From contig NW_002060946.1 in the NCBI RefSeq assembly GCF_000150275.1, positions 1,879,454 to 1,943,453 on the forward strand: 64,000 nucleotides of DNA. Direction: 5' to 3'. Source of the stretch: Trichoplax adhaerens (lineage: Eukaryota; Animalia; Placozoa). The notes under the pieces were generated by a model. That model was not told where the DNA came from. It saw only the letters and a list, made by a program, of their open reading frames with translations, and did not search any database. Both the position numbers and the translations under genes were made by a program. Below, one piece after another: positions 11,582-45,170 of this stretch (its first letter is position 1; every line of letters begins with the position of its first letter).

Positions 11582-11836
11582 ATGCAAGGGGCAAATATTC
11601 ATCTACATTTTCATCATGGTTTTAATGATGACTGTTACGGTAGCGAAGATGATGATTATCAGGTTAATAGATGGAATGAAATTGGTCAAAATTTACAACA
11701 ACTAGCTGATCAATTTGATTTGCAGACAAGGAAAAATTCTTCTTCTTGCTGGAGTAAAAGAATAGTTCGGATGGTTTTACTTCTTGGGATTACCTTAATA
11801 ATATTTGTCTTGGCTTGGATCTACGCCTTTCATTGA
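11582..11836 (+). CDS. Candidate BH3-only protein A (84 aa) with C-terminal transmembrane anchor
   Basis: ATG at 11582 (the ORF-track TTG start is two codons upstream). Acidic N-terminus, BH3-like motif IGQNLQQLADQF at 11681-11716 (compare BMF IARKLQCIADQF), then basic residues and a hydrophobic tail VLLLGITLIIFVLAWIYAFH. GTAAGT donor at 11872, 35 nt after the stop. Confidence 0.75.
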   Translation: MQGANIHLHFHHGFNDDCYGSEDDDYQVNRWNEIGQNLQQLADQFDLQTRKNSSSCWSKRIVRMVLLLGITLIIFVLAWIYAFH

Positions 11837-19873: not shown

Positions 19874-20140
19874 TGGTGCTGTAATGTGAAGTACCGTACT
19901 CAACCGTACCGAACCGTACCGTGCATGCTCGACAGTACGTTCTGCATCCTACAGTACTTTTTCAAAGTTTGGACTTGATGTACAAAAACAACTTCTTCAT
20001 CTTTTACTACTATAACGCCACCAGTCTTGCCCGAGCATACAGTCGATCTTTTCCTATCCGTCGCCTATGACAGTACTAGCTTACAGTACAAAGCACAGTT
20101 CGGTACTGTAAGGTCAGCAGACCCGTTAAAGTTCACCACA

Positions 20141-20148
20141 ATATAAAA
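20141..20148 (+). promoter_or_regulatory. Putative TATA box of gene B
   Basis: ATATAAAA in relatively GC-richer context ~320 bp upstream of the ATG, with Inr-like tcatagt/tcaattc ~25-30 bp downstream. Confidence 0.4.
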
Positions 20149-20466
20149 CCAAGCTTCGCTCACTTTCATAGTCAATTCTCAAAAATTTTTACTACCGTGT
20201 AGTGGAAGATTGCGTAACAACATTTTGCTAACGCTCTTGATTGCTTATATTTTTTTTTTTTCCTTTTGCCAACTTTTCCAGTCAACTACTTTCAACTTTA
20301 CTTTTCAAGACTTTAGAGTAGATAGTAACATCTTTTTAAGCCTGTTTTACTGTCATTTTATTCGTCCAAAATACCGTCGCCATTTCAGTGTAGTCATTTT
20401 CATTGAATCGAATTTTCACTGTCAAGTGTACACACACACAACGATACATTACAAACGCGCACAACG

Positions 20467-20682
20467 ATGGATCAAGATACAACCAACGAGATCGATGAAC
20501 AAGTTTGGCCTGATATAGGGGCTGATCTAAGGCTCCATGCAGACGAATTTGACAATCAATATCGCCGAAACTCCAATCTTGAAATGGTCATTGCCACATT
20601 TGATGGTATAGTTCAATCAGTGCTATTTCATCAAGTTCTCCGGATCGTACTTCACATCACCGGCAATTATCATCGCCTCTAG
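20467..20682 (+). CDS. Candidate BH3-only protein B (71 aa), PUMA/BIM-like
   Basis: EQVWPDIGADLRLHADEFDNQYRR resembles PUMA EEQWAREIGAQLRRMADDLNAQYERR. Amphipathic C-terminus LFHQVLRIVLHI. 12/23 identity with protein A across W..IG..L...AD.FD.Q.R.NS. TATAAAA at ~20142 and GTAAGT donor at 20712, 29 nt after the stop. Confidence 0.75.
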   Translation: MDQDTTNEIDEQVWPDIGADLRLHADEFDNQYRRNSNLEMVIATFDGIVQSVLFHQVLRIVLHITGNYHRL

Positions 20683-37095: not shown

Positions 37096-37350
37096 CTTAA
37101 GGAATTCTGATCAACCAAGTTATTTGAAAGACTGTAGTTAGCATGACATTTTTTCTACAGTATATTGTCTATTATCACTGTTATTGTTTGTTTTTAGAGT
37201 ACTTAATAAGCCACCATCGTTTGATTAGCTAATCTGCCGGCCCAAGGTCGAGTCTTGCTGGACTTGTTGTTTACAGTACATTTCGTACAGTACAGTACCA
37301 GAAGACCGCGGTACAGTATTTAAATCATTATCGTTTGAATGGCCCAAGGT
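37096..37350 (-). repeat. Inverted copy of 42273-42465 plus 42925-42987
   Basis: For example, ccaccatcgtttgattagctaatctgccggcccaaggtcgagtcttgctgga (37212-) is the reverse complement of 42368-42419, and tgaaagactgtagttagcatga is the reverse complement of ~42938-42960. Confidence 0.9.
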
Positions 37351-37417
37351 AGTACTGTACTGTATCATACTACTGGCCAGCATTGCAATCTCATTCATCG
37401 TACAGTAGCGTGCAATC

Positions 37418-39740
37418 GGGCAGCAGTGTTGATATATAGCGCCGTGGGTTCCCTTCGGTGTTCATTTTGCTTGAAAGAACATCAGGACTCGACCAATTTT
37501 TCGTGTATCGGTCATCTCCAAATTATAACTTACAAGCTGCAAATCAATTTAAACCACCTTGGTTCGTATATTTTTGTTCCAATTAGAACTAAAAAAAATT
37601 GGGTTTTATCCTAAAGTGCAACATTCAATCGGTATCCGCATTACTGTAGTTGGTCTACTTCGTCGAAACGCCTTCAACCACCTGAGAGTCGCATTGAATG
37701 GATGATGCAGATAATATACGTGCTGAAGAAAGGAGGCTATGGCACATTGACGATTTTGCCGAGAACGCTGTACCAAGAGGAAGAAATTATGCTTGGTATG
37801 ATAATCTTCCTTTAATGCGGCGATATTTACGATATTTGCTGCAAGCTTGGCAACAACTACGCTATATTTTCTTCTAGTTGATGGAAACAATTCATTTCTA
37901 TTAAACGTTGAATTGCATAGAAAAAAGGAAAACTTTAATTTTTTTTTGTCTACGTATTTTCGTGCTGTACCATGTTCTACGTGAAGTACACCGATGATCG
38001 TAGCTGGTTTTAATCTGTATAAAACGATGCTGTCTATACTCTTTCTTTCCTTTTTTTCCATATTCTGCTTTGTGCTGGATACACTTAGCAAGATATGACT
38101 TTTTTGATCAATTTCGTATGAATTATCAGGTTATAAAGTTTCAATGCTCTGTAGTTAAATACTACTGTATGCGACAGTGTGATATCCAGTGGTCAATACA
38201 GTATTCAGATGGAATCGCCGTAGGCGGTAGTGCCGGTGAAAATTTGTTGTAGTCAACTTGGTAGTATGATGCTGTAGTATCGCTGATTTCAGCCATATCA
38301 AGTTATCTTGTAATTCTTTCCACTATTATCCATCACCTGTTTGTCATCAATCGCTTGGATCCGCTGTTAATTTCCGAAAAAGTAGCAGAGTACAGTACAA
38401 TATTATTATTATGAATGACCTCTGTAAACAGTGTGTGGACGGACGTACCATGTATTGCGCATGTTGGTCAGCTGCAAAGACTTTCACAGTATGCTGTCTT
38501 ACTCTGAAAAGCGTAAGCGGTACCGATTCCACCTGTAGAGGTAACAAACTGAATTAACCTCCTTGTTATCCTACAAACTAGAGTAAACTCTATACAGTAT
38601 TGTTATTCTTTTTTAGTTCGTTAGTCGGTTAGATAGTCAACTAGTTTTTCAATTGATATTTAATTGTAAAGACTATAATCTTGGGTGCCAAGATTCCTTC
38701 AGTAATAAATGATAGTAAATCTCTGACTATCTCGTCTACATCATCTGTGACGCTATAATTATACCATAGTATTCGGTTGTTGGAACTGAATTATTTGGTG
38801 ATATAGCTAATCTCGCCTCTTTAAGTTAGTAAGTGGCGTTCTACGCAAGGATTGGCGTGTGTAGACTACTTTGTTACTAGTGGTGTGTGACAAGTATCTA
38901 TATACAGATGTATACAGTACTGTACAGTACATATCGATAAACTACAAGCCGACGGACGCGTACGCAATCGAACATGAATTTCAATTGTAACCGCAATGTT
39001 AACTAGTTTTTAATTTTCTTCTTGTCATCGAGGTACAAATTTGTTACTCGATATGTTATGCTTGATTGATTATATATTGTTATTGTTGTACAGTATATAT
39101 AGTTAGTAATAGATTAAATACGATATCTTAACCATAAAGGCATAAATAAAGGAAACACTATACTGTATATGTACGTATACTGTACTGTATGATGATTGTA
39201 TGGTAGTACTTGTAATACAGTAGGTGATAACATTGTAAAAGGCGGACTGATAAGCTACTAATTGTAGTGCGAAGTATAAACTGTAATCGTATCGAGGTGT
39301 AACCTCGTGTAGCTGTAAATACCGATCAACTAATAATAAAATGCGGTTATCAATCTTACTCACGGAGTGAACTTATTATTGAAGAACATAACAGTTATTA
39401 CATGTAAAGTCAATGAACAGACTGTATTTGAAGATATTTTGCTTCATGAAAGGATAGACTAGAGAAATGGCGATGCAGTAATATTTGATATTTTGGTAAT
39501 GATGGAGTACAATCCGTATATTATGACGTCACAAAATGATGACCATTTTTCAATCAAGTATAGAATCCATGATCGCGCTAATTAACTTACTGTCATAGTT
39601 AATTTACTTTCATCGATCGACAAATTTTTCAAATCGTGTAAGACGTATTACTATTCATAAAATATATCTTGATAGCGTAATTTAAATTTAAATTTGTATT
39701 GATCAATTAACTCTATTAATAGCCCTACATAGGAACTTTT
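37418..39740 (+). repeat. Segmental duplication copy 1 (direct repeat of 43215-45170) carrying the BH3-dead paralog
   Basis: Long near-identical blocks with copy 2. Segments unique to copy 1 at ~38580-38897 and ~39085-39395. Confidence 0.95.
37698..37877 (+). CDS. Duplicate of protein C with mutated BH3 (59 aa); BH3-dead paralog or incipient pseudogene
   Basis: Manual translation: MDDADNIRAEERRLWHIDDFAENAVPRGRNYAWYDNLPLMRRYLRYLLQAWQQLRYIFF*. The ORF is intact, but AGRRLRRIGD has become EERRLWHIDD. Confidence 0.6.
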   Translation: MDDADNIRAEERRLWHIDDFAENAVPRGRNYAWYDNLPLMRRYLRYLLQAWQQLRYIFF

Positions 39741-39745
39741 AGGTT

Positions 39746-40978
39746 AACAATAGGTCTAAGGCGCATCTTGCGAAGATGCGCCTTAGACCTATTGTTCCCG
39801 TATGAAAACAATACAGCATGCATAGTAGGCGTGAACCTTCAGCAGCTAGTAGCAAAACGGCGTAGAATCTACTGCCTTTGCTATTAAACGAAAATGTTAC
39901 TGTACAGTACTGTATGCCATACAGTAGGATAAAGCTGGTGTCATGTCTAGTACTGTGGACGTTCGCCAGTTTTAATGAACGAACGTGCGAACGTCCAATT
40001 TGAACGTCGGACGTTCATTGAACGTACCAACGTACACAGTGTACAGTGTTAACACTACAGTATATAGTGTACACTGTACTGTACAGTAACCGTGCATTTG
40101 TACAGCATACAGTACAGTACATTACAGTACAGTACAGTACTGTACACAGTACACGATATAAAGTTACTGAACCTCTGACAGGTCTACACGGTACGGTATA
40201 AAGTTACTGAACCTCTGTTAAATGAGCACATTATCGTAAACCGTCAGTAAAGCGACGGGAGTTTGCACTACTGTACAGTAGTGACTCTGAAATACAAAGT
40301 GTTGTACTGTAAAAGACGTTTGTACTACTGTACTGTATGTACAGTACTGTACTGTACTGTATAGTATTGGGGTGGGATTATACAAACTGACTGTATACAC
40401 TGTACTGTACACTGTACACTGTACAGTACAGTTCGTCGACGTCCGATCTGACAACGAACGTACATACCGAACGTCCAAAATCGAACGTCCGTTGGACGTC
40501 CAATCGCTCGACGTCTACAGCACTAGTCATGTCTACTGTACTGTACTGTACTACTGGCCATTGCAATCTCCTTCATCGTACAGTAGCGTTCAATCGATCA
40601 AGCATTGAATTTTGTTAACCATTTTTTTTTTTGGGTTAACAAAGTTCAATGCTTGATCGATTGCACGCTACTGTACGATGTACGATGAAGGAGATTGCAA
40701 TGCTGGCCACTAGTATGATACAGTAGACATGGCACCAGCCTTAAATGCTCATTGTTAAACTGTACAGCGTGTATGGAAAGTCTCCAAAGACTTTCCAGTA
40801 TTTTTCCTAGAAATTTGAAACATAAATTCCTAACATTTTCGTTTAATTGCATAGGCAATAGCTTCTATGTCGTTTTGCTACTAGCTGCTGAAGGCCCACG
40901 CTTACTATGCATGCTGTATTATTTTCATACGGAACAATAGGTCTACGGCCGCATCTTCCTTTCCTTAGACCTATTGTT
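39746..40978. mobile_element. Two head-to-head copies of a ~340-bp hairpin-ended non-autonomous element (possibly Helentron/HINE-like)
   Basis: 39785-39899 is the reverse complement of 40831-40945, and 40558-40620 of 40635-40702. Terminal hairpin at 39746-39796. Further partial copies at 42984-43115 (+) and ~37355-37418 (-). Ends abut TTAA. The family assignment is inference. Confidence 0.6.
39948..40525. mobile_element. Non-autonomous hAT-type element (MITE), 578 bp
   Basis: TAG...CTA termini and 15-bp TIRs (tagtactgtggacgt / acgtctacagcacta, 2 mismatches). 8-bp TSD gtcatgtc at 39940-39947 and 40526-40533. The empty site is visible in the related copy at ~43075-43095. Subterminal AACGT/GACGT repeat arrays. 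Confidence 0.85.
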
Positions 40979-43214
40979 CCCGTATGAAAACAATACAGTT
41001 TAAACAATAAGCAGTACGTACAGTAAATACAGGCCAAAAATAGAAAAGTCTATTCAGCTCGATGGATGTTGCTTCTTAGTTAAATTGCCCTATTTTTATC
41101 GTTATACTGATCCAATCATTGATATATATTAACAATTATATGAATAGTGAACAATTTGCAATATGTTATGTATCTCTTTCTTGAAGATTAAGCTATAAAA
41201 GTTAAAAATGAAGTAAAAACGCTGCCCAAACCCGATCAAATTATTGATTTTCTAACCCGAAATGAGCACAATCGCTATACAAGCACTGCATTAGCACAGA
41301 ATTACTTGACTTTGAATCCCTCCCTGGAGTTGGGTTTGAGGTTGACTTTATTAAGGACACTAATGCTGGCTCTTCTCGGCCACCGTAGATAGCTGACTGA
41401 GAATGAAGGTTCCATTGATTAACGAGTCACCGTTTCTTTACAAATCTCATTTACTGTATATGACGTATGTACACACTATCCAGTATTATTTGCGAGTTAA
41501 GATAAAAAAGTTTATTCTCTTCCGGATGAATTGCTTATGTATTAGCAGCAGAGCTTATCTTCATATTTTGAATAGCTAGTCAATAACTCCTACCGTACTG
41601 TAAAAGTAAAGTAACCAATCTCAAGTACACGATCACTAAGTTAGTACACGTTGCAACGCGTTGTAGATCATCTTATATTCAATTAATTATTTGTCAGGGA
41701 CTACTGAAGGAAAGAGAAAGAGAGACAGAAAAGGATTTTTCATCGACAAAAATGTGAGAATCGATTTTTTTGCTGGTCATTTGGCTATACCTGAAGACTG
41801 AAAGCGTACAACGTCACCAATCACCTTGGAGGCACTTTTTTGCGAGCACACTTGTAAACAATGTACTGTACTGTACATTCAAGTGTACAAGTGTACTGTA
41901 CAGTACGATGTGTTCATTTCCTTTCAGACTGGGAAAAAGGGAAGAACAGTACCGAAATCAAGGTCAAATTACTATACTTTATACCATAATGGAGCTAGAG
42001 AGCTGAACTTTTTATACAAGTTGATAGAATTAAATGTCTATGCAAGAAGAGTCGAAGCAGATAGTAATCATTACTATGTACAATACTTTGCCATGCCAAA
42101 GTTGGAAACGAAAATAAACCCACGTTTACAGGCGGAGGGGGTTCCATTTTTATCGATGAAAAGTCGTCGTTTCCTGTCTCTTCCTTTTTCTTCCGTACAG
42201 TGTACAGTACAGTACACTACAGTACTGTATAAAATGTACTGTCAACATTGAACAATAAGTCAAGCAAGGTTCGACCTTGGGCCAATCAAACGATAATGAT
42301 TTAAATGCTGTACCGCGGTCTTTTCGTACAATACAGCACAGCACAGTACAGTACTGTCAACAACAAATCCAGCAAGACTCGACCTTGGGCCGGCAGATTA
42401 GCTAATCAAACGATGGTGGTTTAAATACTTTAAACAATAACAGTGATAATAGACAATATACTGTATATCACACTAGGCAATTGTCGATATTATGATAGCC
42501 CTTTAATAATCAATTAAAATGTTCCACTTAGCGCGCATTCAAATGTAAATGAAGCGTACAGTACATACTGTACGTACAGTACAATAGAGAGAGGAAAGAT
42601 AAAACCGCTATTGAATGGCATAGTACGTACAGTAGAAGTTGACCAACGGTATTACAGTACTGCAAGACTGCAAAGTACTGTACACTGTACAGTATGTTTA
42701 TGTGTACTGTACTGTACACACAAACTGTGCAGTATGAATAGAGTGTGTGGAAAGTCATTTGATATTTGTACAGTACAGCGTTTACGGGAAATTTTTGTAC
42801 TGTACAGTGTACAGTATACTGGTGTACTGTACAATGTACAGTACACGATAGTAGCGGATGTCGGAGACCTTTTACTATTTTGAACCCCCAAAAACACCAC
42901 GGGCGCTTTATTATTTTAATAAGAGTGTAGCAAAAATTCATGCTAACTACAGTCTTTCAAATAACTTGATTGATCATAATTCCTTAACAAAGTTCAATGC
43001 TTGATCGATTGCACACTACTGTACGTACGATGAAGGAGATTGCAATGCTGGCCAGTAGTATGTACTGTATGATACAGTAGACATGACACCAGCTTTATCC
43101 TATGGCATACTGTACAGTACTGTACTGTACAGTACAGTAGAACGATCGAACGAGGAGTCAGTCGATTGTACTCTACGGTACAATGTACTGTAGTGTTTCC
43201 CAAAAAAATTAGGG

Positions 43215-45170
43215 GGGCAGCAGTGTTGATATTTATAGTTAGCATTGTGATATATAGCACCGTGGGTTCCCTTCGGTGTTCATTTTGCTTGAAAAAACAT
43301 CACCACTCAACCTTTTTTTCCTGTCTCGGTCGTCTCCAAATTATAACTTACAAGCTGCAAATCAATTTAAACCACCTTGGTTCGTGTATTTTTGTTCCAA
43401 TTAGAGCTAAAAAAATTGGGTTTTATCCTAAAGTACAACATTCAATCGGTATCCGCATTACTGTAGTTGGTCTACTTCGTCGAAACGCCTTCAACCACCT
43501 GAGTGTCGCATTGAATGGACGATGCAGATAATATACGTGCTGCCGGAAGGAGGCTACGGCGCATTGGCGATTTTGCCGAGAATGAAGCACCAAGAGAAAG
43601 AAATTATGCTTGGTATGATAATCTTTTAATGCGGCGACATTTACGATATTTGCTGCAAGCTTGGCAACAACTACGCTATATTTTCTTCTAGTTGATGGAA
43701 ACAATTCATTTCTATTAAACGTTGAATTGCATAGAAAAAAAGGAAAACTCATGGATGACCGGTGACACTAGTTGGATAGTGTACGCACTTGGTATCTTGA
43801 GAAAAAAAAAATGAACTTCTTAATTAATTTAATATATCTTACACGTACATAGCTAAACGATTTACTGTGCTTCGTGAATTCTAATATATTATAGTAAGCT
43901 AAACATAGTCTAGCTTGCATCCAAGTGAAAGTGAATATTTTCTTAACTTCAACTTTTATTTTTTTTTGTCTACGTATTTTCGTGCTGTACCATGTTCTAC
44001 GTGAAGTACACCGATGATCGTAACTGGTTTTAATCTGTGTAAAACGATGCTGTCTATACTTTCTTCCCTTTTTTTTTTATATTCTGCTTTGTGCTGGATA
44101 CACTTAGCAAGATATGACTTTTTTGATCAATTTCGTATGAATTAACAGGTTATAAAGTTTCAATGCTCTATAGTTCAATACTACTGTATGCGACAGTGTG
44201 ATATCCAGTGGTCAATACAGTATTCAGATGGAATCGCCGTAGGCGGTAGTGCCGGTGAAAATTTGTTGTAGTCAACTTGGTAGTATGATGCTGTAGTATC
44301 GCTGATTTCAGCCATATCAAGTTATCTTGTAATTCTTTCCACTATTATCCATCACCTGTTTGTCATCAATCGCTTGGATCCGCTGTTAATTTCCGAAAAA
44401 GTAGCAGAGTACAGTACAATATTATTATTATGAATGACCTCTGTAAACAGTGTGTGGACGGACGTACCATGTATTGCGCATGTTGGTCAGCTGCAAAGAC
44501 TTTCACAGTATGCTGTCTTACTCTGAAAAGCGTAAGCGGTACCGATTCCACCTGTAGAGGTAACAAACTGAATTAACCTCCTTGTTGTCCTACAAACTAC
44601 AGTATATACAGATGTATACAGTACTGTACACTGTACAGTACATATCGATAAACTACAAGCCGACGGACGCGTACGCAATCGAACATGAATTTCAATTGTA
44701 ACCGCAATGTTAACTTGTTTTTAATTTTCTTCTTGTCATCGAGGTACAAATTTGTTACTCGATATGTTATGCTTGATTGATTATATTGTTATTACATGTA
44801 AAGTCAATGAATAGACTGTATTTGAAGATATTTTGCTTCATGAAATGATAGACTAGAGAAATGGCGATGCAATAATATTTGATATTTTGGTAATGATGGA
44901 GTACAGTCTGTATATTATGACGTCACAAAATGATCATTTTTCAATCAAGTATAGAATCCATGATCGCGCTAATTAACTTAATTAACTTACTGTCATAGTT
45001 AATTTACTTTCTTTGATCGACAAATTTTTCAAATCGATCGACTAATTTTCAAATCGTGTAAGACGTATTACTATTCATAAAATATATCTTGATAACGTAA
45101 TTTAAATTTAAATTTGTATTGATCAATTAACTCTATCAATAGCCCTACGGGACGTATCATAGGAACTTTT
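43215..45170 (+). repeat. Segmental duplication copy 2 carrying intact BH3 gene C
   Basis: Direct repeat of 37418-39740. Segment unique to copy 2 at ~43749-43955. Confidence 0.95.
43515..43691 (+). CDS. Candidate BH3-only protein C (58 aa), absent from the ORF track
   Basis: Manual translation: MDDADNIRAAGRRLRRIGDFAENEAPRERNYAWYDNLLMRRHLRYLLQAWQQLRYIFF*. The core LRRIGD is identical to BIM. The basic/hydrophobic C-terminus resembles the BIM tail (RLLRYIVRLVW). In-frame TGA immediately before the ATG; TATATAG at ~43251. Confidence 0.72.
   Translation: MDDADNIRAAGRRLRRIGDFAENEAPRERNYAWYDNLLMRRHLRYLLQAWQQLRYIFF

Follow-up and report, generated by a model that had tools for sequence, protein, structure and literature searches.

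The window analysed here is a stretch of 64,000 nucleotides from the placozoan Trichoplax adhaerens (contig C1411, positions 1879454-1943453). It contains a tandem duplication of about 2.3 kb that, judging from two independent assemblies, is real. Each copy carries a short open reading frame (ORF) on the plus strand. ORF C, in the distal copy, encodes a core resembling the BH3 motif, and comparison of the sequences supports the conclusion that ORF D, in the proximal copy, no longer has the BH3-like signature seen in C. The substitutions that separate the two ORFs pile up over this motif; however, silent and non-coding sites are hit as well. The main value of the analysis is therefore a correction: the mutation pile-up is unusable as independent evidence of a functional motif. 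The reading favoured here, tentatively and with somewhat less than an even chance of being right, is that C and D form a pair of plus-strand micro-genes specific to this lineage, in which D would have lost its BH3-like helix by regional mutation or gene conversion and is probably a released or decaying paralogue.

Duplication of the C/D unit

The two copies, their ORFs and the most conspicuous features of their alignment are located as follows.

37422-39728, no strand: duplication unit D, the proximal copy; matched by self-BLAST to 43241-45148 in the blocks 37422-37934, 37931-38585, 38899-39084 and 39394-39728; found in Trichoplax sp. H2
43241-45148, no strand: duplication unit C, the distal copy, from self-BLAST; in H2 at 99% identity
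37698-37877, plus strand: ORF D, 59 codons, without the BH3-like motif (E10, E11, W15, H16, D18); same protein in H2; no Pfam match
43515-43691, plus strand: ORF C, 58 codons, with the BH3-like core LRRIGD, the single exact LRRIGD in the six-frame genome
43746-43950, no strand: insertion of about 205 nucleotides in copy C relative to D, with its anchor in D at 37930
38158-38567, no strand: tract of 410 nucleotides without any difference between C and D in this assembly, from the pairwise alignment

The match between unit D and unit C is interrupted by indels of about 205, 313 and 309 nucleotides. Both copies are present, in the same order, in an independent assembly of Trichoplax sp. H2 (contig NOWV01000046.1), where the plus-strand ORFs C and D encode proteins identical to those in the window. 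The duplication thus predates the H1/H2 split. The flanks of the locus are 99.0-99.1% identical between T. adhaerens and H2, which matches the genome-wide identity of 99.1% (PMC6057997). An additional D-type allele is provided by contig C933, which is 99.4% identical to D, holds every D-specific change of the ORF and has one replacement of its own, A4T. All differences between ORFs D and C are fixed across the three D and two C sequences. The order of the copies in H2 and the D-type allele of C933 rule out an assembly artefact or collapsed haplotypes, and the duplicate is genuine, as the initial annotation of this DNA had taken it to be. Spread of the unit by a transposon is ruled out by the finding that the genome holds only these copies. 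Genome-wide searches, which covered 105.63 Mb in 1414 contigs, found no third copy of the C/D unit at the DNA or protein level, and no older paralogue for polarising the changes.

The D alleles of C933 and H2 depart from the D copy of the window at positions 38345-38346, where the latter equals C. The pattern at this one pair of sites would fit recent gene conversion.

The unplaced contig C933 represents an alternative haplotype of the D locus. Immediately upstream of window position 37160, both C933 and H2 have an insertion of about 1.2 kb, parts of which resemble 42274-42947 of the window in inverted orientation. About 655 bp of unit D (38506-39160) are missing from the H2 assembly, which has about 60 bp in their place.

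Distribution and direction of the substitutions

The comparison of C and D covers 1150 aligned sites with 38 substitutions, 21 of which are located in two hyper-divergent islands. The islands, the stretch that had been flagged earlier and the only indel within the ORF are listed below.

37477-37514, no strand: island 1, in the non-coding leader; 9 of 38 nucleotides differ (24%)
37703-37780, no strand: island 2, codons 2-28, synonymous sites included; 12 of 78 nucleotides differ (15%)
37725-37751, plus strand: codons 10-18, the stretch flagged earlier; 6 substitutions in 27 nucleotides
37808-37810, plus strand: in-frame indel of 3 nucleotides, an extra proline codon in D, from the pairwise alignment

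Outside the islands the copies differ at 17 of 1034 sites (1.64%, or 98.4% identity), and the rest of the 5' part differs at 6 of 381 (1.57%). The best 40-nucleotide window holds nine substitutions, a count matched in none of 4000 uniform placements, and the best 80-nucleotide window holds 12 (P = 0.0005; P < 0.001 with island 1 removed). The initial annotation had described changes clustered in the motif between nearly identical flanks. The clustering is significant across the duplicated unit; however, it is not confined to the motif and extends over codons 2-28. Similarly, the flanks do include the identical 410-nucleotide tract, but the denser of the two islands lies in the non-coding leader, which also contains the densest 27-nucleotide window, with seven substitutions from 37477. 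The ORF (13 of 177 sites) and the upstream leader (14 of 267) do not differ in divergence (Fisher p = 0.42). A model of two blocks, with 5.4% divergence in the 5' block and 1.7% in the 3' block, has been superseded by the two-island model.

The differences include five multi-nucleotide events: GG/CC, AA/TT, AAGA/CCGG, CGCTGT/TGAAGC and CC/TT. After adjacent changes have been merged into events, the four found in a 27-nucleotide window are unremarkable (P = 0.66), and the event count in the pre-specified motif window has a P of 0.02.

The six substitutions in codons 10-18 are located at 37726, 37727, 37729, 37740, 37744 and 37750 and result in five replacements from C to D (A10E, G11E, R15W, R16H and G18D), as had been reported. 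In one codon the second and third bases are both altered, which accounts for two of the six substitutions. Over the whole ORF there are 13 differences, seven of which affect second codon positions according to a hand count, and the plus-frame proteins are 84% identical. ORF D stays open after the 13 substitutions and the indel, in agreement with the earlier statement that the frame is kept with one in-frame proline indel.

The plus frame has 3 synonymous and 10 non-synonymous changes, giving an omega (dN/dS) of 0.86 rather than the value well below 1 that would be evidence of purifying selection between paralogues. The synonymous sites of island 2 are raised about ten times over the 1.6% background, on a par with the replacement sites, and three synonymous changes are seen where about 0.3 would be predicted from the background rate. 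The raised silent sites together with the non-coding island 1 indicate that the pile-up is a regional phenomenon. Because the islands do not discriminate between non-coding, synonymous and replacement sites and contain several tandem-dinucleotide changes, a regional process would be the likeliest cause. An older duplication may have been homogenised by gene conversion except at the two islands, or two clustered multi-nucleotide mutation events may have occurred. Gene conversion and a mutation shower both fit the pattern of substitutions, from which either choice would have to be drawn.

All seven differences in codons 1-18 are A or T in D and G or C in C, whereas other regions are balanced. 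The GC content of the motif is 0.67 in C and 0.48 in D, and that of the window is 0.33. By a rough calculation, this A/T-ward bias in D mildly favours a C-like ancestral state with the changes on the D lineage, a compositional argument that presupposes A/T-biased mutation. If the changes occurred mainly on the D lineage, as is probable, D may be a decaying or functionally released paralogue.

BH3 likeness of ORF C and its loss in ORF D

A PROSITE-style pattern of the BH3 motif reads hydrophobic-x3-Leu-x2-hydrophobic-small (Gly, Ala or Ser)-Asp-x-hydrophobic. ORF C contains the L-x-x-I-G-D core and departs from the pattern at its last two positions. The corresponding region of ORF D, E10-E11-R-R-L14-W-H-I17-D18-D19, does not fit the pattern: it has an aspartate in place of the small residue and glutamates at two upstream positions. 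Both proteins are 58-59 residues long and have no Pfam domain; they are thus short and lack BH1, BH2, BH4 and a globular domain.

The Trichoplax genome contains exactly four genes with the Bcl-2 fold, according to a genome-wide search. One of them is nearly identical to chain A of PDB entry 6YLD (E 1.8e-95), which we take to be the crystal construct of trBcl-2L2 from PMC7527217. In a model of the complex of C with residues 34-176 of trBcl-2L2, the interaction prediction score from aligned errors (ipSAE) is 0.83, compared with 0.06 for the best control. Among solved complexes, 51 of 78 attain this mark, compared with 2 of 108 among mismatched pairs. Contacts agree by at least 72% between runs, and the predicted local distance difference test score (pLDDT) of the partner is at least 57. 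Residues 3, 6-15 and 17-22 of C are located in the modelled groove. The predicted contacts of G18 are N123, G125, R126, V128 and A129, and those of D19 are G125 and R126 of the BH1 motif NWGR. With these canonical contacts, C is predicted to dock as a BH3 helix in the groove of trBcl-2L2. Recognition in the ESM Atlas is 2471 for C, a value reached by 9 of 100 shuffled proteins, and 1423 for D, which has no match. The sub-threshold neighbours of C in the Atlas include clusters of PMAIP1 (Noxa), Bclx_interact (Bim) and PUMA.

In the model, C contacts the groove through four of the five residues that are replaced in D (10, 11, 15 and 18). It had been taken as established that acidic substitutions at the small BH3 positions block binding. 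This holds for tBid G94E and Bad S118E, which lose binding, but BimEL G154E is wild-type-like in live cells (PMC3478303). On the basis of the four contact replacements and the analogy of G18D with tBid G94E, D is predicted to be without canonical binding to Bcl-2 grooves.

Gene-like features of the plus strand

The sequences surrounding the ORFs contain three further elements that are shared by the copies.

37430-37697, plus strand: ATG-free leader before the start of D; 268 nucleotides common to all copies; its partner in C is 43248-43514
37433-37438, plus strand: TATATA, a TATA-like hexamer 265 nucleotides upstream of the start; in both copies (43251 in C); consensus match only
37900-37905, plus strand: ATTAAA, a possible poly(A) signal 23 nucleotides after the stop; in all copies (43714 in C); consensus match only

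The ATG-free run upstream of the start is 358 nucleotides long for D in this haplotype and 331 nucleotides long for C, and at least 268 ATG-free nucleotides are kept in five of five haplotype copies. ATG is the sole trinucleotide of the 64 that is absent from the 356-nucleotide D leader; its complement, CAT, is found there 10 times. In dinucleotide-preserving shuffles, 5.6 ATGs are expected in the D leader (P = 0.0005); P is 0.0045 for the C leader and 0.01-0.02 for the shared 268 nucleotides alone. The window contains 12 ATG-free gaps of at least 300 nucleotides. Nine of them are followed by ORFs of 3-24 codons, and those that open an ORF of at least 55 codons belong to B, C and D only (3 observed versus 0.42 expected), B being another ORF of the window. 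Since it set these three apart, the ATG-free leader may help to rank unannotated micro-ORFs in this genome. The leader, TATATA and ATTAAA played no part in choosing the ORF and therefore provide independent, modest support for a translated micro-gene.

In each copy, a TATA-like box and an ATG-free leader (268 nucleotides or more) precede the ORF of 58-59 codons, and an ATTAAA follows its stop; together they may form a plus-strand unit. In the C version, the N-terminal part is an amphipathic helix whose LRRIGD core resembles that of Bim and is placed by modelling in the BH3 groove of trBcl-2L2; the D version is without this core. From these features we infer that the C/D unit is a lineage-specific micro-gene.

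ORF B and a third short ORF, A, are located elsewhere in the window. The longest plus-strand ATG-free stretch in the window (20067-20467, 400 nucleotides) ends at the start codon of ORF B, which is BH3-like and has 71 codons; the P from local dinucleotide shuffles is just 0.08. ORF A (11582-11836) matches the annotated 117-residue hypothetical protein TrispH2_004895 of H2 at 99% identity along its whole length; the H2 model is 33 residues longer. The search for homologues of ORF A found the H2 counterpart only.

Several results weigh against the micro-gene reading, as does the substitution pattern of the antisense frame that is described in the next section. Searches with C found no homologue of C or D among 5.8 billion clusters (word-based search, 0 matches) or 1.84 billion representatives (phmmer, 0 matches). 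No Pfam family matches C or D at E up to 10, and the six ORFs of the duplicated unit have zero Pfam matches. Both ORFs are unannotated in H2 and missing from the protein collection. The degenerate back-translation of LRRIGD occurs at 8 sites in the genome and its reversed control at 22; about 3-9 exact matches would be expected by chance in a rough estimate, so that the uniqueness of LRRIGD proves nothing. The score of the complex model may reflect memory of solved Bim complexes, which are many. A hydropathy scan found no C-terminal hydrophobic membrane anchor in C or D; the best 18-residue window scores -0.09 in D and -0.20 in C, compared with 2.81 in ORF A. The log-odds of codon usage, trained on 13 Trichoplax ORFs, are uninformative for 59 codons, because even the four real Bcl-2 genes score just -0.02 to 0.14.

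It is unlikely, yet well within reason, that neither strand codes and that the locus is intergenic DNA with chance ORFs, a chance LRRIGD and neutral differences between C and D. The 9 kb around the locus contain 26 ORFs of at least 58 residues, and the locus adjoins a TACAGTA satellite. The structure model would be expected to dock any peptide that contains a Bim core. The omega of 0.86, the failure of the cluster, HMMER and Pfam searches to find homologues, and a number of exact LRRIGD matches within chance also agree with non-coding DNA. However, an ATG-free leader that every one of the five haplotype copies keeps (P = 0.0005-0.02) and the succession of a long ATG-free gap and a long ORF at B, C and D only are not expected of such DNA. 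The same applies to an indel that keeps the frame of an ORF open despite 13 substitutions, the Atlas recognition of C and the presence of an evidence-based H2 gene model at the locus.

At the opposite extreme, it is improbable that C and D are a translated micro-gene pair in which C is a genuine BH3-only ligand of the Trichoplax Bcl-2 proteins and D a retained, expressed paralogue with a naturally ablated BH3 helix. Such a D could act, under regulation, as a decoy or partner that does not kill, or it could capture a stage in the disarming of a death gene after duplication. Placozoans have been reported to be without BH3-only genes and to regulate apoptosis via four multi-motif Bcl-2 proteins (PMC7527217, PMC8998228). 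Translation of the C/D unit would make C a candidate apoptosis trigger in a phylum reported to have none, and D a naturally BH3-null control in assays of binding and killing.

Antisense ORF

The complementary strand of the D locus contains a longer ORF.

37606-38091, minus strand: antisense ORF overlapping all of ORF D, 161 codons (151 from the ATG at 38061); H2 hypothetical protein P0001

It is distinctly improbable that this ORF (37606-38061, minus strand, 151 residues in P0001) is the real gene and that the plus-frame replacements are mainly its silent third-position changes under purifying selection. Such a gene would explain why, over the 103 codons that the copies share, the antisense frame has 8.5 synonymous versus 6.5 non-synonymous changes, corresponding to an omega of 0.21 (P = 0.008 for that frame and 0.038 across six frames). 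The six changes in the putative BH3 motif, when read antisense, comprise three silent ones, one I/V and one L/R, and the identity between the proteins of C and D is 94% antisense versus 84% sense. Furthermore, the 151-residue version is the sole H2 gene model at the D locus. However, the signal is confounded, because plus-frame second positions are antisense third positions, and the N-terminal third of the antisense ORF is not common to copy C, owing to a 1-nucleotide indel and one of approximately 205 nucleotides. The antisense ORF has three to four upstream ATGs within 300 nucleotides, and a poly(A) hexamer was not found downstream of it. Its codon-usage score (-0.17 to -0.22) is lower than those of the plus ORFs, and the search for homologues returned only itself in H2, with no Pfam match. 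The AlphaFold prediction of the protein is unfolded throughout (pLDDT 34) and uninformative.

MAKER, supplied with transcripts from Trinity and Cufflinks and with ORFs from TransDecoder, produced the annotation of H2 (PMC6057997). Assuming unstranded libraries and a minimum ORF length of 100 residues, the pipeline would choose the longest ORF of an unspliced transcript; it would report the long antisense ORF for a transcript of either strand and could not report an ORF of 59 codons. The H2 model therefore speaks indirectly for transcription of the D locus but is no evidence of the strand.

Proposed selection on the motif

The initial annotation proposed that selection had driven the changes in D, either to remove a toxic extra dose or to create a decoy, and that the pattern of changes independently implies a functional motif. 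Selection for amino-acid change would not lift silent sites or produce the non-coding island 1, and detoxification by selection is therefore unsupported. Nothing indicates that selection removed the motif from D, and both proposals are without support on the same grounds: omega is 0.86, silent and non-coding sites are raised equally, and the six changes are mostly silent in the antisense frame.

It is very improbable that C is a working BH3-only killer and that selection drove the motif-destroying changes in D, even though the substitutions are significantly clustered over the N-terminal half, divergence in island 2 is about ten times the background, residues 10, 11, 15 and 18 are modelled contacts, D keeps its open frame, leader and ATTAAA in all haplotypes, and selection sometimes keeps apart islands that have escaped gene conversion. 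Against this stand the equally raised synonymous sites, the denser island in non-coding DNA, the extension of island 2 to codons 23-28, beyond the motif, and the tandem-dinucleotide events, which lower the count of independent changes; moreover, a glycine-to-acid replacement does not always abolish binding, as exemplified by BimEL G154E (PMC3478303), and the killing activity and expression of C are putative.

Neighbouring DNA and the Bcl-2 genes of Trichoplax

Gene models of H2 mapped onto the window place two genes on either side of the duplication.

About 32.1-35.2 kb, minus strand: Fcf1/UTP23-like gene, from H2 gene models mapped onto the window
From about 46.7 kb, minus strand: FSIP1 gene, from H2 gene models mapped onto the window

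The exons of the UTP23/Fcf1 neighbour encode 30-55 residues each. The 11.5 kb between the two genes contain a TACAGTA-type satellite and the duplication. The satellite, rich in TACAGTA and TACTGTA, occupies positions 39700-43200 and has stop-free ORFs of up to 141 residues in several frames, which inflate the ORF counts near the locus. It contains a near-perfect palindromic hairpin (40583-40671) with sub-threshold matches to unrelated miRNA precursor models on both strands. The best match scores 46 bits versus a gathering score of 89, and the hairpin is probably a structural look-alike. An Rfam scan of 36.5-45.5 kb found zero matches in the duplicated unit, and the sub-threshold hairpin matches are confined to the satellite.

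The sequence just upstream of unit D (37097-37418) is an inverted copy, 84-94% identical, of sequence within 42274-43069, upstream of unit C. These inverted copies imply that the rearrangement went beyond a simple tandem duplication.

On contig C1388 (405634-425576), two members of the set of four Bcl-2-family genes lie about 20 kb apart on opposite strands: a trBcl-2L2-like gene, the one with the match to PDB 6YLD, and a Bak-like gene with the BH3 motif LAQLGD.

Comparison with known systems

ORF C resembles the BH3-only proteins Bim, Noxa and Puma (PF08945 Bclx_interact, PF15150 PMAIP1 and PF15826 PUMA) in being short, having no other BH motif and having a predicted helix whose core, LRRIGD, is exactly that of Bim. 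In the model of C, this helix occupies the groove of trBcl-2L2 and D19 lies against the arginine of BH1; the neighbours of C in the language model include these families. C differs from them in that the residues after GD are F-A instead of an acidic and then a hydrophobic one, and in that it has neither a profile match to these families nor a membrane anchor. By contrast, ORF D, with its aspartate for the small residue and its upstream Glu-Glu, has no BH3-like features.

The closest counterparts of D are the mutants engineered to inactivate BH3 (tBid G94E, Bad S118E and BimEL G154E), as G18D is a natural glycine-to-acid change of the equivalent small residue. However, D has four further replacements in the helix, and the effect of the engineered mutations depends on the protein (PMC3478303).

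ORFs A and B of the same window share with C and D a short length, location on the plus strand and little or no annotation, and with C a BH3-like helix; B, too, has an ATG-free leader, of 400 nucleotides. Nevertheless, neither has detectable similarity to C or D, and A has a strongly hydrophobic tail (2.81) that C and D do not have.

As a pair, C and D resemble tandem paralogues shaped by patchy gene conversion or clustered mutations. A background of 98.4% identity is broken by islands of 15-24% divergence and by tandem-dinucleotide differences, and within the tract that is identical here the D alleles vary in their closeness to C. The pair differs from such paralogues in that the genome holds no third copy as a donor, and the mechanism suggested for C and D comes from the pattern of substitutions alone.

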